A DNA stretch of 64,000 nt from MZ443769.1; one strand, 5' to 3'. Shown: positions 4,230 to 63,498, counted from the stretch's first letter. A program made the numbers and translations. Notes: generated by a model from the letters alone, not told the origin.

Positions 4230-4236
4230 TTTACAG
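4230..4236 (-). promoter_or_regulatory. CTGTAAA motif upstream of primase
   Basis: TTTACAG on + strand, ~44 nt upstream of the only minus-strand gene. Confidence 0.6.
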
Positions 4237-4253
4237 ATAAAGGAAAAAAGACA

Positions 4254-4595
4254 ATGGTTAATGCGCATCGTTACGTGCATACAGCGGTACGTCGCTTCTA
4301 TGCACCACATTGGATTCAATTTTGTGATCAGATTAAAGTAAGCCCGCAGACGCATGGTGCATTCGACAAGCAAGACAACATGCTTGGTCTGCAACTGCCC
4401 CGTAACTTGTTTGACCAACGTATCGATCAGATGGTGCGTCCGCTCAAGTTGGTTTATTCTGTTAAGGAAAATGAAGTAGAGTCTCGCTGCTATCTGTTCG
4501 GCGTTCGCTATTACGTTTTTGTTTTCTTCGAAGAAGTTATCGCTGTCAGTGAGGACACATATGAGAACGTTCGCAGCCGTACCCAGCAGGGCTAA
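4254..4595 (+). CDS. hypothetical protein (113 aa)
   Basis: AAGGA SD upstream; 3' end overlaps next gene. Confidence 0.55.
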   Translation: MVNAHRYVHTAVRRFYAPHWIQFCDQIKVSPQTHGAFDKQDNMLGLQLPRNLFDQRIDQMVRPLKLVYSVKENEVESRCYLFGVRYYVFVFFEEVIAVSEDTYENVRSRTQQG

Positions 4596-5646
4596 TGATA
4601 CTCGTGTGTTGTCACGTATCGGCAAGATGGTTGATGCAGCACTCGACGTAAAGATTCAAGAGAGACGCTGGCCAAAGAAGCGCGTTAGTCCTTCTATGTT
4701 TCCTATCTGTGCAATACAGGAATATGCAAAGCTCCTGTATCAGAAACACAACAACGCTGTTACTGGCGAGTCAGGTACGCTGCTGAATATCTTTGCGAAA
4801 GCAGGTACGGGGATGCACGAAGCTGTACAGAATGCTCTCGGCAATAGCGGTCAGATGGTCGGTCACTGGAAGTGTAGAAACGAGAAGTGTCCAGAACACG
4901 CGAAGACCAAAGGTAAAATGGTTGATGGTAAGTATAAGAAGGGCAAGTATACGCGCACTCGTAGCACGAATAATATTTGTCCCTGTTGCCAACAACCGAT
5001 GGCTTATGCAGAACTCAAAGTCCTGTACAAGTCGCTCAAAGGTTATGTCGATGGCCTTATTGATAATCTCGACGGCACGTATAGCCTGATAGATTTGAAA
5101 TCAACGACGATCAAGAAAGCTGGTGACGGTACCTTCTTCGTGAAGTATCACCGTTTCCAGATCGCAACGTATGCTTACCTGCTGAAAAAGCGCTACGGAT
5201 ATAACATCGTCGATTACACATTGATTTATGTACCCCGCGATAATCCGAAGAACTTTGTTGAGAAGACTTTCCTTTTCGATGAAGCTGAATCAAAGCGCAC
5301 AAAAGATTTTATGATGGAGCAAATTAACGCATGGGACGCGGCTGTTACTTCTGCTGCTAAGTCAGATCCCCTTGCAGCGATGAAGCGCAAGCCTTGCAAA
5401 AGTCCCGAGTATTACTGGGACGAGTTCCACGGTTACGATGTATGCCCCTTTGTTGATTACTGTTTCATACAGTCACACCTGATCGAGTTCCTCGCAAAAC
5501 TGGAACAACGAATCATGGCTAACCCCGATCTGTCTTATACGGAGATTATCAAGACAAGTCGGAAAACTCAACAACAAGGATTGATGCAGGACAAAGCGAA
5601 GAAGTCGCAACGTCCCGCAGTGATCGTAAAACAATTTGAACTATGA
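4561..5646 (+). CDS. Cas4-like PD-(D/E)XK exonuclease
   Basis: Start set at ATG 4561 (GAGGA SD); PSMFPIC, HEAVQ, YVDGLID..IDLKST, QIATYA motifs; C-terminal Cys cluster (PC...CPF..YC). Confidence 0.8.
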   Translation: MRTFAAVPSRANDTRVLSRIGKMVDAALDVKIQERRWPKKRVSPSMFPICAIQEYAKLLYQKHNNAVTGESGTLLNIFAKAGTGMHEAVQNALGNSGQMVGHWKCRNEKCPEHAKTKGKMVDGKYKKGKYTRTRSTNNICPCCQQPMAYAELKVLYKSLKGYVDGLIDNLDGTYSLIDLKSTTIKKAGDGTFFVKYHRFQIATYAYLLKKRYGYNIVDYTLIYVPRDNPKNFVEKTFLFDEAESKRTKDFMMEQINAWDAAVTSAAKSDPLAAMKRKPCKSPEYYWDEFHGYDVCPFVDYCFIQSHLIEFLAKLEQRIMANPDLSYTEIIKTSRKTQQQGLMQDKAKKSQRPAVIVKQFEL

Positions 5647-6053
5647 GCATACAAAAAGACTACGAACGATCAAAGCGTAGGCTTATGACTGCTGTTCATC
5701 GAATGGAAGAACTAGGATATGTGGTGCCACGATGCGTCGATGTTATTGTCGATAAAATCCTGCCACCACAGCAAGTAGTGTCACGAAAATATTTAGTGAT
5801 GCTCATGCTGTTCAGCCAGACGTGCGAGACACTAGGTTACACTCTGACTACGCGAGAGCAACTGGTTGTTAAGCTGACACTGTTAAGCCGCAAACACCCT
5901 ACACCAGAGATACAGCGACGTATTGAGAAGCTCGATGCTCTGGTTATATCGCATGACAGGAATATCGAAAGCCAGAGATTGTTGCTTGACTATCGCAGTG
6001 CAATCCTGATTGAAATTCTTGAAGGGCGAGAACCAAATTCACGATATACCTGA
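5643..6053 (+). CDS. hypothetical protein (136 aa)
   Basis: ORF track; ATGA overlap with upstream stop. Confidence 0.65.
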   Translation: MSIQKDYERSKRRLMTAVHRMEELGYVVPRCVDVIVDKILPPQQVVSRKYLVMLMLFSQTCETLGYTLTTREQLVVKLTLLSRKHPTPEIQRRIEKLDALVISHDRNIESQRLLLDYRSAILIEILEGREPNSRYT

Positions 6054-6061
6054 GGTGCAAC

Positions 6062-6568
6062 ATGATTGTATTTATTAGTCTGAGTCAAACGACTTCTGAC
6101 AAGAATCGAGACAAACCGACTAGCCCTGAATCAAACACGGGCCGTGTCGATATCTCCGAGTACGCTAGTCTGGAGAAGAAAATCCGTCTGACTGATGAAG
6201 CTAAGGACAAAGAGAAGTTAGCTCAACAGGCTGGTGGCGGGGATTCTGTAAAGGGTAAGAAAGACGCTAAAAAAGGCGATACTTCTAAACCCAAAGAAGA
6301 TGACGCAGACGCGGATGCTGGTGACGACGATGAAGGCGGGGATGACCCGGACTTTGGCTTCGGAGGTGGTGACGATGATGCAGATGATTCTTCCGATGAT
6401 AGTGGAGACGACTCCGATGGAGCAGACGATTCTACCAAAGGCAAGAAAGGAAAGAAAGCCGGAAAATCCAAAGCTGACGAAGCTGACGATGCAGAACCCG
6501 CAAGTGACGACGGGGATGACGATGCTGAAAGCTCTGATGATGAGGAGCTCGATGACGGAGACGTGTGA
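6062..6568 (+). CDS. acidic low-complexity protein
   Basis: GAGGTG SD; D/G/K-rich; begins MIVFISLS. Confidence 0.75.
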   Translation: MIVFISLSQTTSDKNRDKPTSPESNTGRVDISEYASLEKKIRLTDEAKDKEKLAQQAGGGDSVKGKKDAKKGDTSKPKEDDADADAGDDDEGGDDPDFGFGGGDDDADDSSDDSGDDSDGADDSTKGKKGKKAGKSKADEADDAEPASDDGDDDAESSDDEELDDGDV

Positions 6569-10082: not shown

Positions 10083-10091
10083 CCCAATCAG

Positions 10092-10118
10092 AGCGGTGGC
10101 CATTGTGCTGCCGCTTTT
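10092..10118 (+). terminator. putative terminator
   Basis: AGCGGTGGC/GCTGCCGCT stem followed by TTT. Confidence 0.55.
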
Positions 10119-10459: not shown

Positions 10460-10466
10460 CTGTAAA
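10460..10466 (+). promoter_or_regulatory. CTGTAAA motif
   Basis: AATCTGTAAAT in the gap upstream of the sigma-like gene. Confidence 0.55.
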
Positions 10467-10500: not shown

Positions 10501-11538
10501 ATGAGCGATAAGTCTAATCTCACGGGTGGTCAGATTGAGAGTGTGATGGACACACTTCTTCATGACTGCCTTAGTGAGATTGTTGAGAATACAAATATCT
10601 TTGACGTGCAACTGACATATCTACTCGGTCTTATCACGTCTAATAAAAAGCGAAAGCCGTACAACGCAGAAACCCGCGAACGTGCGATAAGCCTGCTGAT
10701 CAAAGCACTCTCTGTTACGCGGGACCAGAAGATGGTTTATATCCGCGAGCTTAAAATGGAACGTAACTTTATCTACGTCTTCCTGGACAATGTAATTAAG
10801 CGATACTACGCGACGTATGTTGATCTGTATCGCTGCTTTATCGTGACTGCCGATGTGAACAAGCGTATTCGTTATGCTCAACGCCTTGACGTGTACGTTA
10901 AGATGTTCGGTGCGGATTCACGATCAAAGTTGTTTGTAGCACTCAATCGCCTCAATGATTTGCTTCCGCACTTCATGGAATATTTCCATTCGGTTGTTGC
11001 TGACTTCTATCGTCTGTGTACAAAGCAGACACGATTTTATGTTGATACCAATAAAGGCAAACAGTACGACAGCAAAGATGTTCGACAGAACTTCCTGCGC
11101 AACGTCATTATTGCGATCAACAAGTATGACTCGTCGCGTGGTGCGATTGTGAGTTATACGAAGTGGTGGATTCTGAACGCTCAAACCTGTAGCAGTAGCG
11201 AACACGAATATGGGATCGCGTATACAATACCGCAGACCCAGCGTAAGAAACTCGCAACAGGTGAAGATACCACTTCACTCAATTTCTCGGTTAGTCTCGA
11301 TGCTCCGACTTCTGAATCTGATGAAGGACCGGACGCGAGCCTCCATCAAAAAGTGAGTGACCATCATCACTTAGAAGATCACGTCGATAGCGAAAGACGA
11401 ACCGGAAAGCTGAGACTCTTGATTAAGCGTGTAGACCCGTTGGGTGTCGCTCGCCTCACGATGGATGTGGGTGAGGAGTTCGACAAAGACGAACTGGAAT
11501 TTATGCGCCGTTACATGAAGTCTCAACGGCTAGCCTAA
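10501..11538 (+). CDS. phage sigma70-like transcription factor
   Basis: IAINKYDSSRGAIVSYTKWWI matches sigma region 2.3-2.4; VSLDAP matches region 3.2; region 4 degenerate. GTG 10489 is an alternative start. Confidence 0.75.
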   Translation: MSDKSNLTGGQIESVMDTLLHDCLSEIVENTNIFDVQLTYLLGLITSNKKRKPYNAETRERAISLLIKALSVTRDQKMVYIRELKMERNFIYVFLDNVIKRYYATYVDLYRCFIVTADVNKRIRYAQRLDVYVKMFGADSRSKLFVALNRLNDLLPHFMEYFHSVVADFYRLCTKQTRFYVDTNKGKQYDSKDVRQNFLRNVIIAINKYDSSRGAIVSYTKWWILNAQTCSSSEHEYGIAYTIPQTQRKKLATGEDTTSLNFSVSLDAPTSESDEGPDASLHQKVSDHHHLEDHVDSERRTGKLRLLIKRVDPLGVARLTMDVGEEFDKDELEFMRRYMKSQRLA

Positions 11539-11540: not shown

Positions 11541-11547
11541 CTGTAAA
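11541..11547 (+). promoter_or_regulatory. CTGTAAA motif
   Basis: Intergenic, upstream of the SSB gene. Confidence 0.55.
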
Positions 11548-11582: not shown

Positions 11583-12845
11583 ATGGCACGTGGATTTGAT
11601 AACATCAGCGACAACAGTAAGCGCGACAGCTTACGTGAGTCGGATATCTTTGAGATTTATCCGTTAGCGAAAAAAGCTGCTGGCGGCTGGGTGTCTATTC
11701 GTTTACTTGAAACTGACCTGCTGCCTATCAAAAAGCACTGGATCAAAATCATGGGCGGCAAAGACAAAGACAAAGAAATCAAAATCCCACGTCTTTGTGT
11801 TAGCTTCGACCCTGACAATGCCGGTAAACCGTTACGCGGTATGAAGTGTCCGTACTGCGGCATTGCTCACGGTAACGACGAATCAGGTGCACCAGCGCAG
11901 TACGACTTTAAGTGGTATGCGCAAGCGATTGTTCGTGATGAACAAGAAACTCAGCCACGCAAATTGCCGAAGCACACGAAGCAAGAGCTGAAAACGAAAA
12001 AGAAAGAAAAAGGCTCAGAAAGCTGGACTCCGGTATTTTGTATTCCGCTCACTAACAGTCTGGCTGGTCGTATCAAAGAGCTGGGCGAGCGCAACATTCA
12101 CAACGTTAAAGACAAAAAGTCTGGCAAGAAGTCTAAGCAAGCGTTTCAGGTCAATCATCCGAAGTACGGCTGTGACATTGAAATCAAATACAACGCTAAG
12201 AAATCTCCTGCCGAGCGTTACTCAATCGAACGCGGTGAGCATAAGCCGCTGACCGAAGAAGAAAAAGAATATCTGACCTGGGACTTCGAAAACTGGGAAG
12301 AGATTTATGATCTTCTCGGCCGTCTGTCAGAAGCAGATGCTCTTGCTGACTTCAAGAAGATGGACGTTCTCGGCGTCGAACCTGATGATAGCGATGACGA
12401 CGAAGACGACGATGACGATGGCATGTCATTGGGCAAGAAAGGTAAAAAGTCCAAGAAGTCTCGCAAAGACGATGACGACGAAGACGACGAGGATGACGAA
12501 GACGAACGACCGTCTAAGAAATCCAAGAAGTCCAAGCCTTCTAAGTCTAAGCGTCTGCTTGACGATGATGAAGACGACGAAGACGAAGATGATGAAGACG
12601 AAGACGATCGTCCATCTAAAAAGTCCAAGAAGTCTTCTAAGGACAAAAAGTCAGTGAAGTCCAAGAAGTCTAAAAAATCCAGTCGTGACGATGACGACGA
12701 AGATGATGAAGACGAAGACGAAAAGCCTAAGAAGAAGAAAAAGAAATCTTCTTCTGCTGACAAGTCTTCCGTGAAGAAGAAGAAAAAGAAATCTTCTGAC
12801 GACGATGAAGACGAAAAGCCAAAGAAAAAGAAAAAGAAAAAGTAA
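11583..12845 (+). CDS. T4 gp32-like ssDNA-binding protein with long D/E- and K-block tail
   Basis: HWIKI...CPYC...WYAQAIVRD...YGCDIEIK pattern recalls gp32; adjacent to the recombinase; C-terminal ~150 aa low complexity. Confidence 0.6.
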   Translation: MARGFDNISDNSKRDSLRESDIFEIYPLAKKAAGGWVSIRLLETDLLPIKKHWIKIMGGKDKDKEIKIPRLCVSFDPDNAGKPLRGMKCPYCGIAHGNDESGAPAQYDFKWYAQAIVRDEQETQPRKLPKHTKQELKTKKKEKGSESWTPVFCIPLTNSLAGRIKELGERNIHNVKDKKSGKKSKQAFQVNHPKYGCDIEIKYNAKKSPAERYSIERGEHKPLTEEEKEYLTWDFENWEEIYDLLGRLSEADALADFKKMDVLGVEPDDSDDDEDDDDDGMSLGKKGKKSKKSRKDDDDEDDEDDEDERPSKKSKKSKPSKSKRLLDDDEDDEDEDDEDEDDRPSKKSKKSSKDKKSVKSKKSKKSSRDDDDEDDEDEDEKPKKKKKKSSSADKSSVKKKKKKSSDDDEDEKPKKKKKKK

Positions 12846-12910: not shown

Positions 12911-15403
12911 ATGGCCAAAGAGAAGAAAGTAAAAGAACCCAAAGCTAAGAAAGCAAAAGCTGTTGCTTCGGACGATGTGGGTGGAAAAGAGATTAAGGTG
13001 TTTAGTCTCTCAAGCATGATGGACGACACGCTCGATCTCATTGAGAAGAAAACGAAAGTAAGTTCTCAGGATGCAGCGCGTCACGCACCACGTATCTCAA
13101 CTGGTGTGCTCGCTCTCGATATGTATCTCGATGGCGGTATTGTACCTGGTGGCTGGTACACATTCGCAGGCGGTGAGCAGTCCTGTAAGTCTACGATGAC
13201 CATGAGTATCATGGCGTCTCTGATTCGACTGAAATATAAAGGGACCAGCGTAGTATTCGACTACGAAGGTTCAACCGATGCTGACTACGTTGCTGGTCAG
13301 TTGAAAACGTTTGGCGTTACTGTCGATCCGAAAACAATCTTCGGTGTGCGTGATACTGATGGTGGCGGCTGGATCATCAAACCTCAGATCCGCTACTACG
13401 CACCTGATAACGGTGAGCGCTTCTTCGATTACATGTCGATGCTGCGTCGTCGTCTGCCGAACAAAATCGTTGAGAAAGACGGCTCTGCGTATTACGTCTT
13501 TGAGAACACCAAAGAGAACGCGAAGAAAGTCGCTGGCTTCTACGATAAGAAGTGGTTCAGTCGTAACAACGAATTCAAAGTACCTGCCGAAGATGCACAC
13601 ATGCAGGCTATGGTTATCGTTGACTCATATCCGGCCATGATGCCTGATGCTGTCGATGATGACGATGGTTCAAAAGCAATGGCGATGCAGGCGCGTATGT
13701 TCTCTGACGGTATCAAACGTTTCCGTGGCGGTATGCGTCGTAAGATGATGACTATCGTTGGCGTTAACCAGATTCGTCTGAAACCTGCTGTGATGTTCGG
13801 CCCGCCTGAGTACGAGCCGTGTGGTGAAGCGTTGAAGTTCTATTGCTTCGCGTCTGACACTAACATCCGTACTGATCACGGTGTGCTGACTGCACCTCAG
13901 ATCAAAGAGCTGCTGGATGATGGTAAAGACGTTAGCGTTGAATCGTTCGACGGCTTCCAACAGATCGTTCAGGCGTGGAAAGTCGATGACGCTCCATTCC
14001 CTATCGAGCTGTACGCTGGTGGTCACGCATATGTTGGCAGTGCAGAGCACCGTCAGTTCACGCTGATGCACGACACAACCGATGATGGTATGCGTGTGTT
14101 ACGCCCTGAGTGGAACACGCTCAATCAGCTTGCGCAATTCCCAAGCGCCGAAGGCCAGTACGCAGCGTTGCGTGTTGCTAAAGTTGAAGAACTGAAACAG
14201 CATACGCCTGACGTGTATGATGAATCTTCCGCTGCTGTTAAACGCCTACTCGCTAACTGCGATCCACAAAGCAAGCAACTGCCTCTCGTATCTAAAGGTG
14301 ATACGACGTATGCAGCGAACTGCCTCGTGATTGATATGGTTGGTGATAGCACTGACCAGTCAGACTTCGAGCTGTGGGTTAAGCACTTCATGAACATCGG
14401 TATCTTGGCGTTTGCTGATGCTAACGGTATCTGGTTGCCGGGTCTGCATAAGCATGAGCTGGAAGAAGCCTTAGTTCAAGATGCTCTCGGTGCACACGCA
14501 GGTATCAGTGATGCTTCGTCCGCTCGTCAACGTCAGACTCAGATGCTGACTGTGATCGCTGACGTATTCCCTGAACTGACTCGTTACGTCCTCGACTACA
14601 ACCTGACTAACGAGCCTATATATCTGGCTCCTGGTTATGATTTCGCGGAAGCGCTTGACGCAATTCTGCATAAAGAAATCAGCGGTTACGACGACCAGTA
14701 CGATCTGCTGATGACTCAGCTTGCGTACATCGAAGACTGGTACACGGTCTGTGACTCAATCGTTCCTGTTCCGTTCTCTCTTCGCGCTCTCGACCGTGCT
14801 GTTGAGTTCTGGGATGTTAACGTTGCATCAACCTCAGTCGTTATCACGAACAACTTCGCATCGCATAACAGTGACGTGCGCGTTCGTCTGACTTCTCGCG
14901 CTGTGCCTCAGGGCTGGCCTGTGATGAAAGACGCTCACGGTATCGTCGGCGAGAAGTCTGTTACTGTTGAAGGTGGTACTGACCGCTATCGTTTCATTGC
15001 GGCTAAGACTACCAAGAACAAGATGGGTGGCATCCCGAATCAGCAAACGTGGATGCGTTTGTGGGAAGCAGATGGTAATGGTGAAGCGCGTGGCTTCGAC
15101 CCAGTGTTTGACTGCTGGCATTATCTGAAAACCCTGGGCTTGATCAACGGTACGCGCAAGAACTTCAAAATGAAAGCGCCGTGTCCTCTCGCATCTGATG
15201 TTAAGATCGATTGGGACGAGTTCCGTACTTTGATCAACGGTAACAAGCAACAAATCATTGACGTGTGTCGTAAGCTGAAAGTGAAGAAGCCTCTGTCTCT
15301 GCGTACGTGGTGCTTCAAGTTCGTGCAGTCCACACAGGGCAAAGAGATGTTGAAAGCGTCTATCAGTAAGTCGGCTAAGGTCGAAGACGACGAAGACGAT
15401 TAA
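12911..15403 (+). CDS. recA: RecA/UvsX-like recombinase interrupted by an intein
   Basis: RISTGVLALD, Walker A GGEQSCKST, IVDSYPAM, GVNQIR, GEALKFY motifs. Confidence 0.9.
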   Translation: MAKEKKVKEPKAKKAKAVASDDVGGKEIKVFSLSSMMDDTLDLIEKKTKVSSQDAARHAPRISTGVLALDMYLDGGIVPGGWYTFAGGEQSCKSTMTMSIMASLIRLKYKGTSVVFDYEGSTDADYVAGQLKTFGVTVDPKTIFGVRDTDGGGWIIKPQIRYYAPDNGERFFDYMSMLRRRLPNKIVEKDGSAYYVFENTKENAKKVAGFYDKKWFSRNNEFKVPAEDAHMQAMVIVDSYPAMMPDAVDDDDGSKAMAMQARMFSDGIKRFRGGMRRKMMTIVGVNQIRLKPAVMFGPPEYEPCGEALKFYCFASDTNIRTDHGVLTAPQIKELLDDGKDVSVESFDGFQQIVQAWKVDDAPFPIELYAGGHAYVGSAEHRQFTLMHDTTDDGMRVLRPEWNTLNQLAQFPSAEGQYAALRVAKVEELKQHTPDVYDESSAAVKRLLANCDPQSKQLPLVSKGDTTYAANCLVIDMVGDSTDQSDFELWVKHFMNIGILAFADANGIWLPGLHKHELEEALVQDALGAHAGISDASSARQRQTQMLTVIADVFPELTRYVLDYNLTNEPIYLAPGYDFAEALDAILHKEISGYDDQYDLLMTQLAYIEDWYTVCDSIVPVPFSLRALDRAVEFWDVNVASTSVVITNNFASHNSDVRVRLTSRAVPQGWPVMKDAHGIVGEKSVTVEGGTDRYRFIAAKTTKNKMGGIPNQQTWMRLWEADGNGEARGFDPVFDCWHYLKTLGLINGTRKNFKMKAPCPLASDVKIDWDEFRTLINGNKQQIIDVCRKLKVKKPLSLRTWCFKFVQSTQGKEMLKASISKSAKVEDDEDD
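13844..14869 (+). mobile_element. intein (342 aa) in recA
   Basis: Starts CFASDT after ALKFY; block B SAEH; ends SHN followed by extein Ser; removal restores ALKFY-SDVRVRL. Confidence 0.9.
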
Positions 15404-15458: not shown

Positions 15459-15836
15459 ATGTCAAAAACGTATCTCGCTGATATCGGAAACTTAGGTCTT
15501 ATCAAACTGGCTATCAATGCTGACGTTCGCCCTCTGAATATCGAAACGCTCAAAGAGCTGGACTCTGCTGATCTGCCTACTGACCTGAACCGTGTGTACA
15601 TCGTTGGTGCTAACGTCGCGCCTGCTATGTTCACTGAACTCGAAAGCTACATCGACCCGTCTGAACTCGTTGCTGACGTTGAGAAAGGTAATATCGGCAA
15701 GCTGTTCAACCGTGATGTTATTCGCAGCGAACAGGTAGACCCTGATATGCTGGCGCTGGTCCTGCTGTTTAGTCCGAACAATGACAGCGAAGCACTCGAA
15801 GTTCTCGGCTTTGCTGCTGTGAAGATTAATCTGTAA
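15459..15836 (+). CDS. hypothetical protein (125 aa)
   Basis: AGGA SD; strong codon bias. Confidence 0.75.
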   Translation: MSKTYLADIGNLGLIKLAINADVRPLNIETLKELDSADLPTDLNRVYIVGANVAPAMFTELESYIDPSELVADVEKGNIGKLFNRDVIRSEQVDPDMLALVLLFSPNNDSEALEVLGFAAVKINL

Positions 15837-15837
15837 A
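15831..15837 (+). promoter_or_regulatory. CTGTAAA motif
   Basis: Overlaps the stop codon; followed by a 9-bp hairpin at ~15847-15869. Confidence 0.5.
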
Positions 15838-18563: not shown

Positions 18564-18901
18564 GACTATTCTTAGTCCTGTTCTCTAATTTCTAAACGTC
18601 GGCAAGTAGTGCTGACGAGACGTTATTGGAGAATAACATGTGCGGACGTAGCCTAGTACGGTTGAAGTATCTCGCACGGTCCTCGAACTGGTGCAACAAT
18701 AAAGTAAACGCTTGTAATAAGCGGAAGGCGAAGCATGTACAGTGTGAAGAATTTCTGGCAGCCACGAAAGGTTGTAGCACTGTCCAACTCTCGCCCAGTG
18801 TTATCTCGTTCTATTGTAATTCTGAACTGGTCGGTCAGACAGTATGGCATGAAATAGAAGGCGATAATTCACTTCAATTCCGTCTGTTACTCGCATAGTC
18901 T
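18563..18901 (+). ncRNA. candidate structured ncRNA (~340 nt)
   Basis: Largest gene-free gap in the core block; many nested helices; ends complementary (AGACTAT/ATAGTCT); followed by a terminator. Confidence 0.5.
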
Positions 18902-18942: not shown

Positions 18943-19006
18943 ATACGCTAATTTTTAAACGTATAAACGCGCGGTGTTCCGCTACCTCACTCTAAGGATA
19001 TTCATT

Positions 19007-22372: not shown

Positions 22373-22900
22373 ATGAAAAATCAATACCTCATTATTCGCA
22401 TGAAAGCCGCTGACCTGTACAACAACAAATTTTTAATGCGCGGCTTTGATCGAAAACGTATCGAGCAAGTCATCGGTATCGTTGTCGTTGTGGCTGATGA
22501 ACACAGCACTTCCCTGAAAGACAACATGTATCACCTGTCCAACGTTGGTGTTGAAATGTTAGTTTCTGATACGCAGCAAAAACATGCGCGACTGTTCTGG
22601 AATGACGAAGACCGTCGTGTGATACAAGATGGTAAAACACTTCTGCCTGCGGATTTACGCAAGACGATTGATTCTATGCTGAACAATCGTATGTACCATA
22701 CAGTAGATACTCAAATACCAGAAGCGTTTCGTGAGTGCCACACTGTGTTTGATATTCCGACAGGCACAGAAATGCGTGAACGCATAAATAAACGCTTGCG
22801 TGATTCGCAGAAGAAAGACGTTCTTGATAAATTCACTGTAGAAGAATTATTGCAGCACCTGAAGAAACGTACAGGCGCTAAAATCACACTCGAACTGTAA
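22373..22900 (+). CDS. hypothetical protein (175 aa)
   Basis: ORF track. Confidence 0.7.
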   Translation: MKNQYLIIRMKAADLYNNKFLMRGFDRKRIEQVIGIVVVVADEHSTSLKDNMYHLSNVGVEMLVSDTQQKHARLFWNDEDRRVIQDGKTLLPADLRKTIDSMLNNRMYHTVDTQIPEAFRECHTVFDIPTGTEMRERINKRLRDSQKKDVLDKFTVEELLQHLKKRTGAKITLEL

Positions 22901-22901
22901 A
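22895..22901 (+). promoter_or_regulatory. CTGTAAA motif
   Basis: Overlaps the stop codon, upstream of 22957. Confidence 0.4.
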
Positions 22902-22956
22902 TCAAAACTAACCAATAGCCCTGCATGTGTGGGGCTTTTCTGATCTGGAGAATGCT

Positions 22957-23785: not shown

Positions 23786-23812
23786 AAGGGCTGCCTAACG
23801 GTGGCCCTTTTT
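23786..23812 (+). terminator. rho-independent terminator
   Basis: AAGGGCTGCC-TAAC-GGTGGCCCTT then TTT. Confidence 0.75.
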
Positions 23813-23817: not shown

Positions 23818-23824
23818 CTGTAAA
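23818..23824 (+). promoter_or_regulatory. CTGTAAA motif
   Basis: Immediately after a terminator and before 23857. Confidence 0.55.
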
Positions 23825-23856: not shown

Positions 23857-24216
23857 ATGCGCCGCTCTTTCATTGTATTTCTTATCTCTCAAGGCGAACT
23901 AAACAACGGTCGCTTCTTTCAACCCAAGATGAAACTTGGTGCAGACCTGCTGGCTCACATTGATTGTGTGTTGCTCGTCGTGCGTGATACCAAACACGTC
24001 TACTGCCCTAAGCAGTTTGAGCACCGTGAAAGCGCAGAGCCTGGAATCTATCAGGTTGACTTTGAAGACATGCAAGAAGTCACCACGATGATCAATGCTA
24101 TTCAGGCACTCAAGATGCCTATTGACAGGACTGCACCGATCGAAGAGATTCGCTATTTCTTGCGCACACCAGCACAAGACACAGACCCGTCACTTGTAAC
24201 TTATATCGAGGTATAA
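23857..24216 (+). CDS. hypothetical protein (119 aa)
   Basis: ORF track. Confidence 0.65.
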   Translation: MRRSFIVFLISQGELNNGRFFQPKMKLGADLLAHIDCVLLVVRDTKHVYCPKQFEHRESAEPGIYQVDFEDMQEVTTMINAIQALKMPIDRTAPIEEIRYFLRTPAQDTDPSLVTYIEV

Positions 24217-35970: not shown

Positions 35971-35977
35971 CTGTAAA
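35971..35977 (+). promoter_or_regulatory. CTGTAAA motif
   Basis: Intergenic, upstream of 36011. Confidence 0.55.
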
Positions 35978-36010: not shown

Positions 36011-36376
36011 ATGATTAAACAACTTCCGAACATCGTCAAAGGTATGAACTGTGACGATGCTGCCGATTACGTCGGACTTCACGAGTACAGCGCTACTGTC
36101 AAAGGTACGTGGCGTCTCATTCATGGTTTGAGTGCAAGCGGTGAACGGGTCGTTGTCCTGTCCGTACCTCAAGACCATCATGTGCTGCCTGACTACAAAG
36201 GCGTTCAGACTCTTATCCACTACGGCTTCAAAGAAGTGGACGCTCTGCTTGCGTTGTGTATTCATCGTAACGAGTATGCACAAATGAAGAAGAAAGACAG
36301 AGCTGCCAAACGTAAAGCAGCCGAAGTAAAACAACAACCGCGTCGCAGCGGTCCTGTATCTCTCGACGACCTTTAA
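36011..36376 (+). CDS. hypothetical protein
   Basis: TAAGGA SD before ATG 36011. Confidence 0.7.
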   Translation: MIKQLPNIVKGMNCDDAADYVGLHEYSATVKGTWRLIHGLSASGERVVVLSVPQDHHVLPDYKGVQTLIHYGFKEVDALLALCIHRNEYAQMKKKDRAAKRKAAEVKQQPRRSGPVSLDDL

Positions 36377-39589: not shown

Positions 39590-39967
39590 ATGATCGTCAT
39601 CTGTAATTCTTCGAAAGACTTTTCTTTTGAACGGTTGTCACACGGGGACGCATTTGTTTTTGGAAAGACACGCATGTTACTACGTGCGGACTTTATCGTC
39701 CTGACCGACAAGAACAATGCTTTCTATGTTATACGCAAATCTGATGTTGTTTGGTCGCCGGAACTTACTGGTGCAACGCAAATGGTGAAAGTCCGGGCGT
39801 TTGCCCAGATTAAACCGTTCGAACTAAACACTGCATGTCCGCAATTCAACAGCCGCGTATACGGAACAGTAGCTTTTCGCAACACGCACTTTGAGTATCG
39901 GTTAAATCACCTACAATATAAACCAACACAGTTCGGAGGTTTACATGGCACGGTATCATGTGTTTAG
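39590..39967 (+). CDS. hypothetical protein
   Basis: GGGGTG SD before ATG 39590. Confidence 0.55.
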   Translation: MIVICNSSKDFSFERLSHGDAFVFGKTRMLLRADFIVLTDKNNAFYVIRKSDVVWSPELTGATQMVKVRAFAQIKPFELNTACPQFNSRVYGTVAFRNTHFEYRLNHLQYKPTQFGGLHGTVSCV

Positions 39968-40193
39968 CGCTACCCATCAGTATTACGGCGAAGCTTACGC
40001 TGGGACATATCTTAAAGATATCGACATGGGCGTAACGCTGAACCAAGCGGAGTTCAAGGACTTCGCCTCAGCCAAAACTTGTGCGGATAAATTGCATGAG
40101 GTTTGCGATATAGGCTGGATTGTCTACAACGCATTTTCTGAAATGCCGATGTACGACACTCGGACGTCTACTGACGAGTCTGTAAATACATAA
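39945..40193 (+). CDS. hypothetical protein (82 aa)
   Basis: GGAGGT SD. Confidence 0.65.
   Translation: MARYHVFSATHQYYGEAYAGTYLKDIDMGVTLNQAEFKDFASAKTCADKLHEVCDIGWIVYNAFSEMPMYDTRTSTDESVNT
40180..40186 (+). promoter_or_regulatory. CTGTAAA motif
   Basis: At the 3' end of the upstream ORF, ~80 nt before 40264. Confidence 0.4.
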
Positions 40194-40263: not shown

Positions 40264-40773
40264 ATGAAACGTTTTATCACTGCTATCGCTTTTGTTGTTG
40301 CTTCTTCTAACGCATTCGCTTCTGCCCAGTACGTTGCGCCAACAATTAGCGGACTGAACCCAAGCACTGACCTGACTATCACTCATGCACTTGATAGTTC
40401 TTGCAGCACAAAGCTGGCGACTGCTATCGATCTGCGTGGTGGCCTTGTTGATTTTGCTGTCAACAAGAATACCATCGACACTAAACCTCTGTGGCCTCTG
40501 CTGTGTAGTCCGACAGTTGAAGCCACTAAAGTGGATGTGGAACGTGCGGGGCAAGACATTACTCTGACCTATATCAACCGCGATAAATCAATGCCTAAGC
40601 TGATTATCGTTATGCAGCGCGTCGAATCTGAGAACGACGATGATGCGCCAACGTATCAGATCGTCCGCGTAGGCGATATGAATGCTATGGGCTATGAAGA
40701 ACAAGCGGCACTGCAAGACTGGCTGCTTGATTGCTACGCTGCAACTAATCAAGATTCGTTGGCGCTGAACTAA
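40264..40773 (+). CDS. putative secreted/periplasmic protein
   Basis: Sec-type signal MKRFITAIAFVVASSNAFA; two Cys. Confidence 0.7.
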   Translation: MKRFITAIAFVVASSNAFASAQYVAPTISGLNPSTDLTITHALDSSCSTKLATAIDLRGGLVDFAVNKNTIDTKPLWPLLCSPTVEATKVDVERAGQDITLTYINRDKSMPKLIIVMQRVESENDDDAPTYQIVRVGDMNAMGYEEQAALQDWLLDCYAATNQDSLALN

Positions 40774-55336: not shown

Positions 55337-55343
55337 CTGTAAA
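55337..55343 (+). promoter_or_regulatory. CTGTAAA motif
   Basis: Intergenic, upstream of 55412. Confidence 0.5.
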
Positions 55344-55411: not shown

Positions 55412-56647
55412 ATGTCAACTTCAAACAAAATGTTATTGAACGCCCGTGTACGTCGTCTTGATGGTACTGTTACTCACATCAACAAGATCAATACTAACGG
55501 TTATAGCACTGATGCCAAGGGGCCTCAGATACCTGTTAAGCGTCTCGTTCTTGCAGGCAAATCTTTGAAAGAGATTGAAGCGCCGTTCGCAAAAGACGAG
55601 TGCATCATCTCACAAGGCGTTACAGTCAAACTGAACAAACGCCAGCAACGTGAACTCGCAGATAAAGCGCTTGATGAAAAAGCGTTGCGTCCTGACTTCG
55701 GTAGCTTAGTGTTTATCGACCCTGACACAGGCAAAGCGACTGACGGCAAGAAAGTGAAAGTGAAAGCTGGTGCGAAAGAAAGCCTGAAAGAAACGCGCAA
55801 GCATAACAAAGAGCCGAAAGTTAAGAAAGCAGAGAAAGTTTCTGCCAAGAACGATCTGAAAGATTCGCTCGACCTGATTGACGAACGTAAGGCACCTAAG
55901 TCTGCGCTCGTTGAAATGCTCACTGCTACACTCGAAGGCGATACGACGAAAGAACAGCGCAAGCAATTCGCTGATGCGTTTGGTATTGACTGGAAAGCTG
56001 CTAAGAAGCTCGGTGGCAAGGGTATCGTTAAGCAACTCGGACGTAAAGCTGCGCAAGCCGCTGCTGACAAGCTGAATGCTACTGTGACCTCTGATGCGTT
56101 CATTAAGCAGATGCCTCCTGAGTTGAAGCGTCTGATGCGTGAAGGTTCGCTTACTCTGAACAAAACACAGATTGAGCGTGTACTGTCTGCGCTTGGTCTT
56201 GATACGAAGTTCTATGCTATCGCAATGCAGAACTTCCTGGGTAATCTGACACTGGCCATCAAGCCCGAAGAAGTGAAGACTACGCAGAAGAAAAAGAAAG
56301 CTGCACGTCCGCAATACGCGACTGATAAAGATGCGAAGCGCCGTGTAAAGAAGATGACAATAAAGCTGCTGGCGCCTGATGCGAAAGGTATGAAGACTGC
56401 TAAGGCTCATTTGAAACAGGCAAAAGCAATCTTAGCCTCTAAGCTGGGTATCGCTACAAAAGATATTAAACGCGGTCTGATTGTGTATCACAAGAACGGA
56501 GTTGATTACATGTTCGTTGCCTGTGATGTACGCGGTCCGATCTTCATCGACAAAGATGGTGACCCGGCAGTGTATACTTACGCGAACCTGCAAGACACGT
56601 TCGACTTCACACTGACGCCAACCTCTGAGCTGGACGCCGCTGTATGA
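55412..56647 (+). CDS. basic K/A-rich protein, paralogue of 53746-55326
   Basis: LDGT-x10-GY-x22-EIE N-domain shared with the upstream gene. Confidence 0.85.
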   Translation: MSTSNKMLLNARVRRLDGTVTHINKINTNGYSTDAKGPQIPVKRLVLAGKSLKEIEAPFAKDECIISQGVTVKLNKRQQRELADKALDEKALRPDFGSLVFIDPDTGKATDGKKVKVKAGAKESLKETRKHNKEPKVKKAEKVSAKNDLKDSLDLIDERKAPKSALVEMLTATLEGDTTKEQRKQFADAFGIDWKAAKKLGGKGIVKQLGRKAAQAAADKLNATVTSDAFIKQMPPELKRLMREGSLTLNKTQIERVLSALGLDTKFYAIAMQNFLGNLTLAIKPEEVKTTQKKKKAARPQYATDKDAKRRVKKMTIKLLAPDAKGMKTAKAHLKQAKAILASKLGIATKDIKRGLIVYHKNGVDYMFVACDVRGPIFIDKDGDPAVYTYANLQDTFDFTLTPTSELDAAV

Positions 56648-58801: not shown

Positions 58802-61800
58802 ATGTCTGATAACAACGAAAACTTGGGCGCATCAAGCCGCTTCGGCACGGAGTTACAACAACAAGTGACGAACGAACAACGTCGCGCTAACTCTGCTGAA
58901 AGTGGTACCGTACATCGCAGCACTATCGTGGTGCTGACTACCCTGAACTCGAACGAAAAATATTCGTACATGTCTGCCGACGAGCAACTGCACGAAAAGC
59001 CTATCATCGGTAAAATCATCGACCGTCTGCCTGCGCTGATCGAACGTGCATCAGGTCCGTCTGCTGATAAGAACAGCGCGTACTATCTGCTGCATCCGAA
59101 CAACGGTGTACCGACCAGCATTGATGAACGTGTTAAGTTCGGTGACTCGTTTGCTGCTATCGTTTCATATACTGTAAATAAAGCAGTATCAGAGATGCAC
59201 GGTACGCTGTCGCTTGCGCTGTTTGCTGCTGTGGATTCTTCTGACTTGTCAGACTTAGCTGCTGAGTTCGGTATCCACGCAATCGCAATCGTGCCTGCTG
59301 ATAATAGCGGTGTGTTCATCAAAGCACTGACTGAACAACTCGAAGCGCTGCAATCTGTAAACGTACTGAGCATTGACGACACTGATGGTACTCTGGACCG
59401 CGAAGTGATCGACTACGCTGCTCTGCCCGGCAATCCAGTAACTGTGGTATCTGGTGCTGTGCGTACTTTCATTACGCAATCTATCGGTGGCGAAGTCATC
59501 GCTGCAATCCCAAATAACGGAGAGTTCAACGTGAAACAAAACACAATCAATCCTGCGCCAGTCGATCTTGAAGAAGACTTCGATAATGAAGACGAAGTTG
59601 AAGATCAGCAGGAAGACGGTGAAGAAAGTCCTGCGTCTGGTGCCGAGCTGTTCGGCTTCAAGTCAGAAACCCTGACCACTGAACAGATGACCGAAGCTCT
59701 GGAAGCTGTCGGTTATGATTGTTCCGAGTTCGCAGAAGATGAACTGCGTGTATCGTTCGAAACCGAACAGGCGTTGTACCTGTCTAAAGAAGACGACGCT
59801 GCGGAAGAAGAGTCTGATGAAGAAGAATCAGACGACGAAGAAGAAGAAGAAGCGGAAGAAGAAGCGGAAGAAGAATTCGATCCGTGCGCTTCTCTCGCTC
59901 AACTGCTGGCCGAAGAATCTTTCGACCGCCGCGCTCTGAAAGTCCTGGTACTGTCACAAGAACTGAAAGTGTTCAAGTCTGACACCGAAGAAACTCTGGT
60001 AGCGAAGCTGCTGGAAAACGTTGAAGACGCAACGCAGCAAGAGCTGTTTGAGCTGGTATCAACGTTCGTTGAACTGCTGGGTGAACGTGAAATCGAATGC
60101 CCTGCGCTGACTGCTGCGATCTCGTCTGACGACGAAGACACATCAGGTGATGACTCTGACGACGAAGAAGAGTCGGAAGAAGACGAAGACGAAGACGAAG
60201 AATCAGAAGATGATTCCGAAGAAGCGCCTGTCTCTGACCTGACCTCTGTAACTGATCCGCTCGACTACTTCCAGTTTGCTGGTGGTGAACTCGAACATCA
60301 TCACCGTCTGGCCGCTGTTGAAGCGATGGGCGAAAACGTTGAAGGCCTGAACATCATTCAGGTAATGAAAGCGTTCAACCGCATTCAGCAACAAACCAAC
60401 GCAATCGAAATCACCGGCCTGTCCGTCAACGCTGATGTAGACGATGCAGAAGACGCGGGTCTGGAAGATCAGATTCGTGCGATTCTCGAAGCGAACGAAA
60501 GCGGTGACGACGACGACACTGCAATCGAAGATCTGTGGACGCTGCTTGACTGCGCATCTGATGATCAAGACGCTACCATGATTGACGATATCGTTGCGTC
60601 TGGTACCGAAGAGCGTCACGCTACAGCTCTGCAATCTGCCGCTGAAACCTACGGCGTGGACATTTCAGAAATGTCTTACGAAGAAGGTCTGCTCGCATTC
60701 CTGGCCGAGTTCTTCGCTGAAGGTGATGCAGAAGAAGAATCCGAAGAAGAGTCGGATGAAGAAGAAGCGGAAGAAGCTGATGACCGTGAAGGTTACGAAG
60801 CCGATACTGCTGAAAACGCATCGAGCCTGCTGTTCCTGAAAGATATCGACAAGTCAAACCCAATCGGTCCGATGCTGTCTGTTGATATGGCGCAAGCGCT
60901 GATCATCAACTTCACGCTGACTGATGGCCGCACGTACACTGATATCGAAGCTGAACTGAACGACGTTAACGATGTTAACTACCGCATTCCGTTCAACGTA
61001 GGCGCTGCTGATAAAGCTGCCGGTTCTATGCACGTACCTGCCGGTATCATCGTTGATGTTATTCAACGCGCTGGCACCAGCCGCTTCTTAGCTGATCCGA
61101 AAACGTTCGACGTTGGTTCATGGGCTGAAAGTCTGGAACAAACTCTCGACGCTGAGATTCAGAACTCTATCTACGAAGGCCGCATCCCTGATGGCGCTGA
61201 CCCGCAGGAAGCTGGTGTTGTAGTCGGTGACTTCATCGACGAAGACGAGCTGGAAGAAGCTGCCGAGCTGGGTATTGACCCAAGTCAGTTTGACGAAATG
61301 GGTACTGGTGATCATCTGCCGATTGCGAGCCTGTACAACGCACACACTCGCGTTCGTCCGGTTAACGATGGTGATAACTACATCGTCGCTCACACCACTG
61401 TGTTGAACGTTGCACTGCCTGGCTTCTGGGGCGCTGAGTCTGCTGAGATTGTTGGCCGCATGATTCAAGCTGCTGTCAATCGCGTTATCAGTAGCATCGC
61501 AGATCGCACCGACGTTAAAGTCTACGCTGCGTTCACTCTGGAAGCTGCTGCTCTGCTGAACAATAGCAACCTGTTCGCTGCTATGTCTGTGCTGCGTGAC
61601 ATGGAACGTGTACAAGCGTACTCTGCTGCTGACGCCGCTGCGTTCACTGAAACGGATGACGTGATCGAAACTGCATCTGCTCTGGATGATCGTGACCTGC
61701 CGTTCACTGTCCTGACTTCTGGCATTGCACAAGCAACGTTCGAAAACGGCGGTGACCTGACTGTTCTGGTACCATGCTTCGAAGAAGAAGCTGAGTACGA

Positions 61801-61834
61801 AGACGAAGCCGAAGACGACGGCGACGACGAATAA
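58802..61834 (+). CDS. very large, extremely acidic protein (1010 aa)
   Basis: GAGGAG SD; multiple D/E blocks; strong codon bias. Confidence 0.9.
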   Translation: MSDNNENLGASSRFGTELQQQVTNEQRRANSAESGTVHRSTIVVLTTLNSNEKYSYMSADEQLHEKPIIGKIIDRLPALIERASGPSADKNSAYYLLHPNNGVPTSIDERVKFGDSFAAIVSYTVNKAVSEMHGTLSLALFAAVDSSDLSDLAAEFGIHAIAIVPADNSGVFIKALTEQLEALQSVNVLSIDDTDGTLDREVIDYAALPGNPVTVVSGAVRTFITQSIGGEVIAAIPNNGEFNVKQNTINPAPVDLEEDFDNEDEVEDQQEDGEESPASGAELFGFKSETLTTEQMTEALEAVGYDCSEFAEDELRVSFETEQALYLSKEDDAAEEESDEEESDDEEEEEAEEEAEEEFDPCASLAQLLAEESFDRRALKVLVLSQELKVFKSDTEETLVAKLLENVEDATQQELFELVSTFVELLGEREIECPALTAAISSDDEDTSGDDSDDEEESEEDEDEDEESEDDSEEAPVSDLTSVTDPLDYFQFAGGELEHHHRLAAVEAMGENVEGLNIIQVMKAFNRIQQQTNAIEITGLSVNADVDDAEDAGLEDQIRAILEANESGDDDDTAIEDLWTLLDCASDDQDATMIDDIVASGTEERHATALQSAAETYGVDISEMSYEEGLLAFLAEFFAEGDAEEESEEESDEEEAEEADDREGYEADTAENASSLLFLKDIDKSNPIGPMLSVDMAQALIINFTLTDGRTYTDIEAELNDVNDVNYRIPFNVGAADKAAGSMHVPAGIIVDVIQRAGTSRFLADPKTFDVGSWAESLEQTLDAEIQNSIYEGRIPDGADPQEAGVVVGDFIDEDELEEAAELGIDPSQFDEMGTGDHLPIASLYNAHTRVRPVNDGDNYIVAHTTVLNVALPGFWGAESAEIVGRMIQAAVNRVISSIADRTDVKVYAAFTLEAAALLNNSNLFAAMSVLRDMERVQAYSAADAAAFTETDDVIETASALDDRDLPFTVLTSGIAQATFENGGDLTVLVPCFEEEAEYEDEAEDDGDDE

Positions 61835-61846
61835 GCACAAGCCTGC

Positions 61847-61874
61847 AAGCGGCTCTTCGGGGCCGCTTCTCTTT
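61847..61874 (+). terminator. terminator with UUCG loop
   Basis: AAGCGGCTC-TTCG-GGGCCGCTT then CTCTTT. Confidence 0.75.
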
Positions 61875-61889
61875 GAAGGAAATGTGTAA

Positions 61890-62738
61890 ATGTCAGAAGC
61901 AAAGCAAGACAGTATTGACCACGGCGCAAAGCTTGCTGAATTGATTGGTAAGCAAAGCGCAGACTACGACAAGCTGCATTACAGCTACGTTGAAGTGCGT
62001 GGTAAGAACATGGACTTGGAAGAAGAACTCGCCGAGTCCACCAGACGTGAAACGAAGCTGCGCCTCGAAGCGCGTAACACGCAGCGTCTTAACCGCGACC
62101 ATGCGATTCGCCTCGAACGTATCATCGAGCAAGAACGTGGTGATAAGGTTGATGCGCAAAACGAAAATGCTCGTCTGCTTGTTCAGATCGATAAGCTGAA
62201 CGAAACTGTAAAACAGAAGCATGTAGAGCAAGCGTCTGTTGTTCTGCAAATGATAATGTCAGAATCTGTCAGGCAGTTCGGTAATGTTGTTCAAGCTGTA
62301 TCTCACATGTTCGTCAATCGTCGTAAGTCAAAAGCCGACGCAGCCATGCAATCCGCATTGCTGATGGACTATGTGACTAAACAGCCTTCACTGTACCGCA
62401 CTGTTGCGCAGTATTACAACTCAATCAATCTGCCTGTACCAACCGCAGCCGCGTTGAAGTTGCAAATGATTGAGCACGTTAAACTGAACGCGCATCTGTA
62501 TCTCAAAGACCCTGATATTCAAGCCTATCGTGAAGCATTGATTATCATGGTTACGCAACCGACTTCGCAAATTAATCGCAGCCGCATGATGACCAGTGTG
62601 CGTGATGGTTTCGACTACATCAATGTTTTCGATGCTGGGTTCGACGTAGCTATTCTGTCGGACAATACTTCGTGGGCAGCAACACTGTCTGACTCGCTGT
62701 TAGATATTTCGGGTCATCTTATCAGCGCGAATTTTTAA
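61890..62738 (+). CDS. hypothetical protein with N-terminal coiled coil
   Basis: GAAGGA SD; heptad-like E/Q/R-rich N-half. Confidence 0.75.
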   Translation: MSEAKQDSIDHGAKLAELIGKQSADYDKLHYSYVEVRGKNMDLEEELAESTRRETKLRLEARNTQRLNRDHAIRLERIIEQERGDKVDAQNENARLLVQIDKLNETVKQKHVEQASVVLQMIMSESVRQFGNVVQAVSHMFVNRRKSKADAAMQSALLMDYVTKQPSLYRTVAQYYNSINLPVPTAAALKLQMIEHVKLNAHLYLKDPDIQAYREALIIMVTQPTSQINRSRMMTSVRDGFDYINVFDAGFDVAILSDNTSWAATLSDSLLDISGHLISANF

Positions 62739-62739
62739 T

Positions 62740-62771
62740 CTGTAAAAAATATTCGTAAAGTAATCTGTAAA
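62740..62771 (+). promoter_or_regulatory. tandem CTGTAAA motifs
   Basis: AATCTGTAAA with cores at 62740 and 62765. Confidence 0.6.
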
Positions 62772-62833
62772 CACTAATTGAAGTTCACACTGAGCAACTC
62801 GCTCAACCGCATAAATCTGGAGCATTAAAGAAA

Positions 62834-63394
62834 ATGGCAAAAGCTACTAAAGGTACTAATCTGGTTCCGACCATTGTTTCCCGTATCGCAAAGAAAGCTG
62901 GTTCTATCGGAACTACCAAAGTTAAGCCAACTGATCTGCCGCACGACATTCTGATTGAAAGCGTTCACGCTTCTGAAATCGTCGGTTTCATCACAGACCG
63001 TTCTGCTACCAGCGTAACGATTCGTCACAAACGTGGCCACGGTTCTTCTGCTCAAATCGTTTCTACTTTCGGTCCTGGTCAACTGCTGACTGTTCTGGGT
63101 GAAGCCGGTTCTCACGGTCAAGTCCGTGCAATCGTGACTGCACCAGTGTGTGAGCTGAAAGGTTACACTGTTAAATTCGACGGCGCAATCATCATCGCCA
63201 CCTCAATCGAAACGGGCGAAGTGATCAACGTTAACACCAACCTGCCGGGCTACACTGTTCGCGCTACTGTTAACGAAAACGCTGCTGCTAAAAAGTACGG
63301 CACTGCTGCGCCAGTTAAAAACAAAAAAGTTGAAAAGTCTGACAAAGCCGGTAAATCTGCGAAAGCGATTAAAGGCGGCAAAGTAAAAAAGTAA
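62834..63394 (+). CDS. hypothetical protein (186 aa), basic tail
   Basis: GGAG SD; very strong codon bias. Confidence 0.8.
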   Translation: MAKATKGTNLVPTIVSRIAKKAGSIGTTKVKPTDLPHDILIESVHASEIVGFITDRSATSVTIRHKRGHGSSAQIVSTFGPGQLLTVLGEAGSHGQVRAIVTAPVCELKGYTVKFDGAIIIATSIETGEVINVNTNLPGYTVRATVNENAAAKKYGTAAPVKNKKVEKSDKAGKSAKAIKGGKVKK

Positions 63395-63432
63395 CGGCGT
63401 CTGACGAAGACTTTTAATAGTCTCTGACGAAT

Positions 63433-63498
63433 CTGTAAAGAATGATTATGCAGCAACATAAAAAATGTGTTGCTGCCGAATACAAACGAATCTGTAAA
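63433..63498 (+). promoter_or_regulatory. tandem CTGTAAA motifs flanking a hairpin
   Basis: ACGAATCTGTAAA twice (cores at 63433 and 63492). Confidence 0.6.

Follow-up and report, generated by a model that had tools for sequence, protein, structure and literature searches.

Where does transcription start in a large phage genome, and which protein reads the start signal? This question is raised by the heptamer CTGTAAA and the motif CTGTAAATA in a stretch of 64,000 nucleotides (hereafter the window) corresponding to bases 186001-250000 of MZ443769.1, the 261,095 bp genome of Erwinia phage pEp_SNUABM_52 (species Sasquatchvirus Y3). The window matches this record at 100% identity and vB_EamM_Y3 at 99% identity. 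A preliminary description of the window had proposed that the heptamer is a single-element phage promoter whose orientation follows the genes and which is read by a sigma-like protein encoded at position 10501. Judged from sequence, it is very probable that CTGTAAATA is a real promoter, and likely that it belongs to a middle class of phage-specific promoters with a single, -10-type element. The identity of its reader is a more tentative matter, to which we return below. Genome-wide counts refer to the whole pEp_SNUABM_52 genome, and gene functions are taken from the RefSeq annotation of Y3.

Orientation, enrichment and shape of the motif

The genes of the phage are arranged in three strand blocks (plus strand at 1-44.6 kb, minus strand at 44.6-184.5 kb, plus strand at 184.5-261 kb), and the sole exception is the minus-strand primase gene (window 3095-4186), which is also the only minus-strand gene of the window. 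The heptamer follows this layout closely: all 60 copies in the genome point in the direction of the genes, with plus to minus ratios of 16:0, 0:23 and 20:1 in the successive blocks, and the one copy that departs from its block is the one preceding the primase. In the window there are 18 copies (17 on the plus strand, one on the minus strand) as opposed to 9.35 +/- 2.76 in dinucleotide-preserving shuffles, none of which (0 of 100) reaches 18. Ten of the 17 plus-strand copies lie at most 110 nt upstream of a called start, in a zone that makes up 17.7% of positions (binomial p = 2e-4), and the number becomes 12 once the gene truncated at the end of the window is counted. Genome-wide, 41 copies are found within the same distance.

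The preliminary description had suggested a genome-wide check of enrichment and strand bias. An unbiased k-mer search of the region from -80 to -12 relative to 360 called starts returned CTGTAAAT as the top upstream-enriched 8-mer, with 30 of its 38 sense copies upstream of genes where 0.78 were expected (p ~1e-36), and for CTGTAAATA the figure is 23 of 29. Together with the co-orientation of 60 out of 60 copies, this bears out the rule that the motif follows the genes. The logo of the 41 upstream sites reads A-a-T-C-T-G-T-A-A-A-T-A (consensus AaTCTGTAAATA); A occupies position -3 in 29 sites and -2 in 24, T occupies -1 in 25, and 36 have T or C right after the heptamer, in agreement with the earlier remark that the element is often AATCTGTAAAY. 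Also as described earlier, no -35 element accompanies the motif in these sites, no column upstream of -4 exceeding 0.21 bits. The distance from the end of the motif to the ATG has a modal value of 32 nt, and the column 7 nt past the motif is 85% purine. Variants with a single mismatch show no upstream enrichment anywhere in the genome and are essentially unused.

The coding sequences were compared genome-wide with synonymous-codon shuffles. The reverse complement, TTTACAG, does not occur in them at all (0 as against 12.8 +/- 3.3 expected), and sense copies deep in coding sequences are as frequent as expected (14 as against 13.8). Since it is the antisense word that is avoided, the motif would be a direction-dependent signal acting at the DNA level, such as a promoter, rather than a purely RNA element.

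It could be argued that the motif is not a promoter but a signal in the 5' leader of the RNA, concerned with processing or translation control, or else a by-product of gene ends, CTG-TAA-A being a leucine codon followed by a stop. A fixed distance to the start codon would suit an RNA element as well, and the TAA of the motif is indeed the stop codon of the upstream gene in about 6 of the 60 copies. However, this overlap is confined to a minority, and the absence of the reverse complement from the coding strands would be unexpected for a signal that acts in mRNA only. Moreover, there are copies placed directly after terminators, an inverted copy stands before the minus-strand primase, and the window contains no match to an Rfam family. 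We regard this explanation as very improbable.

Conservation and earlier annotation

The motif is kept in related phages. In Alexandra, which belongs to a different genus and has a sigma factor 87% identical to that encoded at 10501, it is found at orthologous sites before the minus-strand primase, the sigma gene and the gene of the single-stranded DNA-binding protein (SSB), after the same terminator, and at others. Pseudomonas phage Lu11 (sigma 37% identical) contains 17 sense copies and one antisense copy in 75 kb, and its operon containing the sigma gene begins with two tandem copies. In PaBG the form is relaxed to aa(C/G)TGTAAA, and in P. putida phage Aura, which is more distant and whose sigma has 24% identity, CCTGTAAATA stands 32 nt before the SSB start. 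PaBG, Lu11 and Y3 have been placed together in the 'Lupandier' group (PMC7412058).

The records of the species Sasquatchvirus Y3 contain no regulatory features. The GenBank and RefSeq record of Lu11 (NC_017972; Adriaenssens et al. 2012) lists 16-nt regulatory features, AAACTGTAAATA, under the label 'putative middle/late promoter', one of them upstream of SSB. These features read aaAACTGTAAATAc and AAACTGTAAATGg, and their common core ACTGTAAAT(A/G) is also present in the window motif. An unusual cluster was seen at about 122.3-123.3 kb of the Lu11 record, where four sense copies of AACTGTAAAT occur within 1 kb inside two coding sequences.

The motif, its orientation rule, its enrichment, the avoidance of its antisense word, its conservation and the separation of gene classes described below were all computed directly. 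The proposal of a single-element, orientation-dependent phage promoter is sustained by the orientation, the first rank in the k-mer search, the antisense absence, the fixed distance to the ATG, the conservation and the label given in Lu11; a role in transcription start, the timing and the reader are what we infer for CTGTAAATA.

Gene classes and timing

A conspicuous feature of CTGTAAATA is the kind of gene that it precedes. These are the genes of DNA ligase, PolA, a second polymerase, the clamp loader, the SbcC operon, a recombination endonuclease, an HNH protein and the primase, as well as SSB, the sigma gene, a DNA methyltransferase, a ParB-like gene, genes of nucleotide metabolism and other metabolic genes, and many small genes. 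When the genome-wide sites are compared with the annotation, the motif never precedes an annotated virion gene.

The same k-mer search returned a second motif, (a)C(g)(C/G)TAATTT(tta), or (C/G)TAATTT in general, located about 30 nt before start codons. The genome has 45 sense and 3 antisense copies of TAATTT; 31 are upstream of starts, mostly on the minus strand at record 46-184 kb, and in the window the search gave plus-strand copies at 4207-4212, 18586-18591 and 18949-18954. The logo of this motif is likewise without a -35 element, it has a G-rich column exactly 7 nt downstream, and the word is depleted within genes in both orientations according to the genome-wide codon shuffles. Both tail-sheath genes have it upstream, as do the PAAR/baseplate genes, a tail operon, the ATPase-MCP operon, the endolysin gene and the portal operon; the motif is kept in Alexandra and also stands before structural genes of Lu11 and PaBG.

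The two motifs are well separated. No intergenic region in the genome carries both, and the share of upstream copies in the minus block is 23 of 31 for TAATTT as against 15 of 41 for CTGTAAATA (Fisher p = 0.002). Among the C-N-N-TAA-N-T-N combinations found upstream of genes, only the CTG..A.[ACG] and C[AG][CG]..T.T forms are used and there are no hybrids. To judge by the genes that it precedes, (C/G)TAATTT is probably the true late promoter. As the genes behind CTGTAAATA are those of replication, recombination and the sigma factor, while the virion and lysis genes carry TAATTT, it looks like a middle promoter and not a late one. The preliminary description had spoken of a middle/late promoter; its first half agrees with this, and the second half is not supported, since the structural and lysis genes have (C/G)TAATTT. 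The major head protein gene and the gene preceding it have leaders (record 105274-105333 and 106042-106094) with neither phage motif, and in these leaders we noticed a common word, TAATCGTCGCG, that begins at the upstream stop codon.

A third class, found by eye in intergenic listings, consists of a box, ATAGGCTRAAATAG, with a TATAAT-like -10 about 24 nt later. The box (cTCTGCAtAaAATAGGCTRAAATAGc) has five copies in the genome, all of them in the window on the plus strand (20777, 26099, 47570, 51569 and 53448), and the -10 sequences that follow are GATATACT, GCTATAAT, GATATAAT, GATACAAT and GTTATACT. Two copies are present in Alexandra. A scan for TTGACA-N17-TATAAT gave few strong sites and no enrichment. 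We take the box and its -10 to be a predicted early class of host-like promoters whose upstream element is unusual, so that CTGTAAATA would be the middle class of a three-class programme in which the host-like class is early and (C/G)TAATTT is late.

Proposed geometry and enzyme

If the motif is read as a -10-type element, TAAATA would occupy positions -12 to -7, TG would be at -14/-13 and C at -15. Transcription would then start on the purine about 7 nt downstream of the motif, leaving leaders of roughly 25 nt. The enzyme would be the core RNA polymerase of the host together with a specificity factor encoded by the phage; the host core is suggested because the annotation of Y3 has no phage RNA polymerase and because only sigma factors are described for this phage group in the PaBG paper (PMC7412058).

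The sigma factor at 10501 and a second candidate

The protein of 345 aa encoded on the plus strand at 10501-11538 is made up of regions 1.2, NCR, 2 and 3.0, a disordered acidic linker (residues 238-287) and three short C-terminal helices (288-341). Pfam, NCBIfam and single-sequence PDB searches gave nothing, and the protein itself matches only the phage-specific PHROG 17569, named sigma factor. It has 234 homologues, some of them with PF04542, and the profile of these homologues matches regions 1.2-2.4 of RpoD and SigA in the PDB (E = 6e-5), the match covering profile positions 110-234 only. In a Foldseek search with its AF2 (AlphaFold) model, which has a pLDDT of 81, all top matches are E. 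coli sigma70 (probability 1.0, about 310 aligned columns), and the melting residues Y430, W433 and W434 of sigma70 are conserved in the stretch SYTKWWILNAQT. This is a genuine RpoD-like sigma factor, carried by 81 phage records and conserved in hundreds of metagenomic contigs of jumbo phages. Neither the AlphaFold model nor the PDB profile match (positions 110-234) gave a recognisable region 4 helix-turn-helix, which fits promoters without a -35 element of either phage class.

A search for a second sigma factor in the ten genes neighbouring 10501 gave nothing in Pfam at E <= 1. A candidate is found elsewhere in the genome: the 376-aa protein encoded at record 259568-260698 is a homologue of PaBG gp112 and Lu11 gp184, and its gene always adjoins a topoisomerase gene. 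PaBG gp112 has been described as a possible sigmaE-like protein, with an HHpred match of 97% to sigmaE (PMC7412058). The best Foldseek matches of the 259568-260698 model are ECF sigma factors (SigH, SigE, SigL, AlgU), at E >= 0.2 and thus not significant, and there are no Pfam or PDB profile matches. On the strength of its model, this protein may be a second phage sigma factor.

Which factor reads the motif

Our single best guess, and a tentative one, is that CTGTAAATA may be read by the RpoD-like sigma encoded at 10501-11538, in which case its own gene would be positively autoregulated. It is the only confidently identified sigma factor, and CTGTAAATA is the most abundant phage-specific signal; autoregulated sigma factors are common. 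The gene would at least be a product of the CTGTAAATA class, because the motif is 34 nt upstream of it and the gene stands behind a terminator at 10090-10117.

Several observations weigh against this assignment, or against the promoter reading on which it is built. Firstly, the sigma gene lies behind the terminator 10090-10117 and CTGTAAATA is the only recognisable promoter before it; if the sigma itself read CTGTAAATA, its expression would face a bootstrap problem. Secondly, the residues of sigma region 2.4 differ among Y3, Lu11 and Aura, whereas the motif is identical. Thirdly, compared with the -10 of sigma70 (T-12, A-11, T-7), TAAATA has the first two bases, T and A, but ends in A and therefore lacks the T at -7 that region 2 of the sigma70 type normally needs and that TAATTT has. 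Fourthly, the copy CTGTAAATC at 22895-22901 (plus strand), which overlaps the stop codon of the gene 22373-22900, would fire into a terminator-like hairpin that follows within 16 nt (22917-22936). This makes it doubtful as a productive promoter, and the copy would be either silent or part of a promoter-terminator pair with some regulatory use. Fifthly, TTTACAG is one of 103 zero-count words among 13,020 comparable 7-mers, and most of the others resemble restriction sites. Finally, no transcription-start or expression-timing data (promoter mapping, RNA-seq) for this phage or its relatives were found in the searchable literature.

A side observation concerns restriction sites. In the coding sequence of the whole genome many palindromic 6-mers, among them GAGCTC, CCATGG, GCATGC, CTCGAG, ATGCAT, TCCGGA, GCCGGC, TACGTA and words containing CCWGG, have zero copies where 8-10 are expected. 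The missing palindromes indicate strong restriction-site avoidance.

An alternative is a cascade in which CTGTAAATA, as a middle promoter, is read by another factor made earlier, candidates being the weakly ECF-like 259568-260698 protein or a host sigma70 redirected by a phage protein, and in which the 10501 sigma, made from the CTGTAAATA class, reads the late motif (C/G)TAATTT. The position of the sigma gene, 34 nt behind the motif and insulated by a terminator in this phage and in Alexandra alike, speaks for this reading, and so do the two tandem copies at the head of the Lu11 operon. TAATTT, with T-12, A-11 and T-7 and its G-rich column 7 nt downstream, suits a sigma with sigma70-like regions 1.2 and 2, and it precedes virion and lysis operons in this phage as well as in Lu11 and PaBG. 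The ECF matches of the second protein and the HHpred result for its PaBG homologue (PMC7412058) point in the same direction. However, the case for an ECF-like protein falls short of significance (Foldseek E = 0.2, and neither a Pfam nor a PDB profile match), ECF sigmas normally require a -35 element and there is none here, and Aura has the motif before SSB even though tblastn gives no homologue of the second protein. In addition, host sigma70 could equally read TAATTT. Phage sigma genes, T4 gene 55 and SPO1 genes 33/34 among them, are usually expressed one class ahead of that which they direct. We consider the cascade a credible possibility, albeit not a probable one, and roughly on a par with the reading of CTGTAAATA by the 10501 sigma.

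One sigma factor might also serve both classes, the 10501 protein reading CTGTAAATA and CGCTAATTT with timing set by affinity or by an auxiliary factor. C-15, T-12, A-11, A-10 and T-8 are common to the two aligned logos, there is a single confidently identified sigma, and Aura seems to have both kinds of motif without a detectable second sigma-like protein. Yet the two classes are sharply separate, with no hybrid forms upstream of genes, and they serve different gene classes, which leaves this explanation improbable.

Comparisons between phages do not discriminate among the readers. The covariation of sigma region 2.4 with the motifs of Y3, Lu11, PaBG and Aura gives no pattern that points to one, and in the phylogenetic profile Aura, where the sigma is present and the second protein unmatched, seems to have both kinds of motif. 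For the PaBG/Lu11/Y3 group as a whole, we speculate that a three-step programme on the host core polymerase may begin with the host-like early class and its conserved upstream box of 25-30 nt and go on with two sharply distinct -35-less classes, CTGTAAATA for replication genes and (C/G)TAATTT for virion genes, read by two different proteins, an RpoD-like sigma without region 4 and a divergent ECF-like protein, with the RpoD-like sigma made from the middle class and switching on the late one; this generalisation is rather doubtful.

Individual copies in the window

All motif positions listed in the preliminary description proved exact. The minus-strand copy, tttatCTGTAAATAc at 4230-4236, is 43 nt upstream of the DNA primase ATG at 4186, in front of the only minus-strand gene as had been said, and there is a copy at the orthologous site in Alexandra. 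The remaining copies are on the plus strand. ggaatCTGTAAATAt (10460-10466) is the copy 34 nt upstream of the sigma-factor ATG at 10501, and the entire leader is kept in Alexandra; the terminator at 10090-10117 lies upstream of the gene preceding the sigma gene. ctaaaaCTGTAAACA (11541-11547) is 35 nt upstream of the SSB ATG at 11583, with orthologous copies in Alexandra, Lu11 (the annotated promoter) and Aura. At 23818-23824 CTGTAAATA comes right after a terminator, as noted earlier (stem 23786-23809 plus a T tail), and 32 nt upstream of the ATG at 23857; both terminator and motif are kept in Alexandra. cgattCTGTAAATC (35971-35977), 33 nt upstream of the ATG at 36011, has an orthologous copy in Alexandra.

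Other copies are farther from the start codon. The TAA of attaatCTGTAAATA (15831-15837) is the stop codon of the gene 15459-15836, and the next start, 15911, is 73 nt downstream. gagtCTGTAAATA (40180-40186) is found in the last codons of the gene 39945-40193, 77 nt upstream of the start at 40264, and has orthologous copies in Alexandra. CTGTAAACT (55337-55343) is intergenic and 68 nt upstream of the start at 55412. Two starts are preceded by two copies each: aatCTGTAAAAA (62740) and aatCTGTAAACA (62765) form a tandem at 62740-62771, respectively 87 and 62 nt upstream of 62834, and aatCTGTAAAGA (63433) and aatCTGTAAATC (63492) form a pair at 63433-63498, respectively 107 and 48 nt upstream of 63547.

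Finally, there are sense copies deep inside open reading frames, at 6246-6252 (CTGTAAAg), 57256, 59172, 59355 and 62206. The preliminary description had seen about four of them, and its four positions are correct, but the copy at 59355 was overlooked, so the window has five. Their number matches the codon-shuffle expectation, and for this reason they are probably chance occurrences or silent.

Two further observations may be added. A copy of CTGTAAATA at record position 85362 precedes a segment of 1.27 kb in the minus-strand block (record 84113-85381) where neither record annotates a gene; searches for tRNA genes and Rfam families gave no match in this gap or in the window. In the window, the UvsX/RecA-like recombinase encoded at 12911-15403 has 830 aa, far above the usual length, and its RecA domain takes up only a part of this (Pfam match at residues 234-313).

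Comparison with known systems

Phage-encoded sigma factors and single-element phage promoters are well known, so no new principle is involved. What is at stake is a transcription map for phages of about 260 kb that infect plant pathogens and in which most genes are annotated as 'hypothetical': three sequence-defined promoter classes would sort these genes into early, middle and late sets. The classes also point to a widespread, truncated RpoD-like sigma whose specificity can now be addressed with two candidate templates.

It is instructive to compare the motif with the late promoters of T4, to which the preliminary description had likened it. The T4 late promoter TATAAATA is recognised by gp55, which works with gp33 and the gp45 clamp. 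It is likewise a single A/T-rich element near -10, without a -35 element and with short leaders, and TGTAAATA of the motif agrees with TATAAATA at 7 of 8 positions. Nevertheless the analogy with gp55 does not hold. TATAAATA itself has 0 sense copies in the genome, and ATAAATA is not enriched upstream of genes. A place for the 10501 sigma in the gp55 family was considered and rejected: hhalign gives a probability of 0.2% against T4 gp55, tblastn finds nothing below E = 0.8, and Foldseek gives sigma70, i.e. the protein is RpoD-like. The second candidate shows no similarity to T4 gp55 or gp33 by hhalign and tblastn. For T4 gp33, of whose 112 residues 101 were used, tblastn gave no match, but a protein this short and divergent may escape such a search. 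The genes served are different as well, since the T4 late class serves virion genes, whereas CTGTAAATA precedes genes of replication, recombination and metabolism.

The SPO1 cascade, in which gp28 is followed by gp33/34, works on bipartite promoters with -35 and -10 elements. The arrangement described here shares with it the presence of several phage-specific promoter classes, of more than one sigma-like protein and of a sigma gene behind a phage-specific promoter. The differences are that both phage classes consist of single elements and that the second sigma-like protein is weakly supported here.

The extended -10 promoters of bacteria and phages (TGnTATAAT), which are independent of a -35 element, resemble the motif in having TG just upstream of an A/T-rich hexamer that starts with TA, no -35 element, and a purine about 7 nt downstream. 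Here, however, TG abuts the hexamer without a spacer base, and the hexamer ends in A, not T. The motif is also far sharper than host -10 elements, single mismatches being unused. Its TGTAAA part may bear some resemblance to the -10 element of E. coli sigmaE.

Lu11, a member of the same phage group with a homologous sigma, offers the closest parallel. Its annotated promoters have an identical core (AAACTGTAAATA), obey the same orientation rule and include a copy at the orthologous SSB site, and they differ in preferring AAAA upstream of the core instead of AAT. The Lu11 promoters are themselves predictions only, and the record merges middle and late and leaves the TAATTT class unannotated. A promoter of the CTGTAAATA type is therefore already annotated in a relative, and what is added here is the three-class map together with two defined candidate templates.

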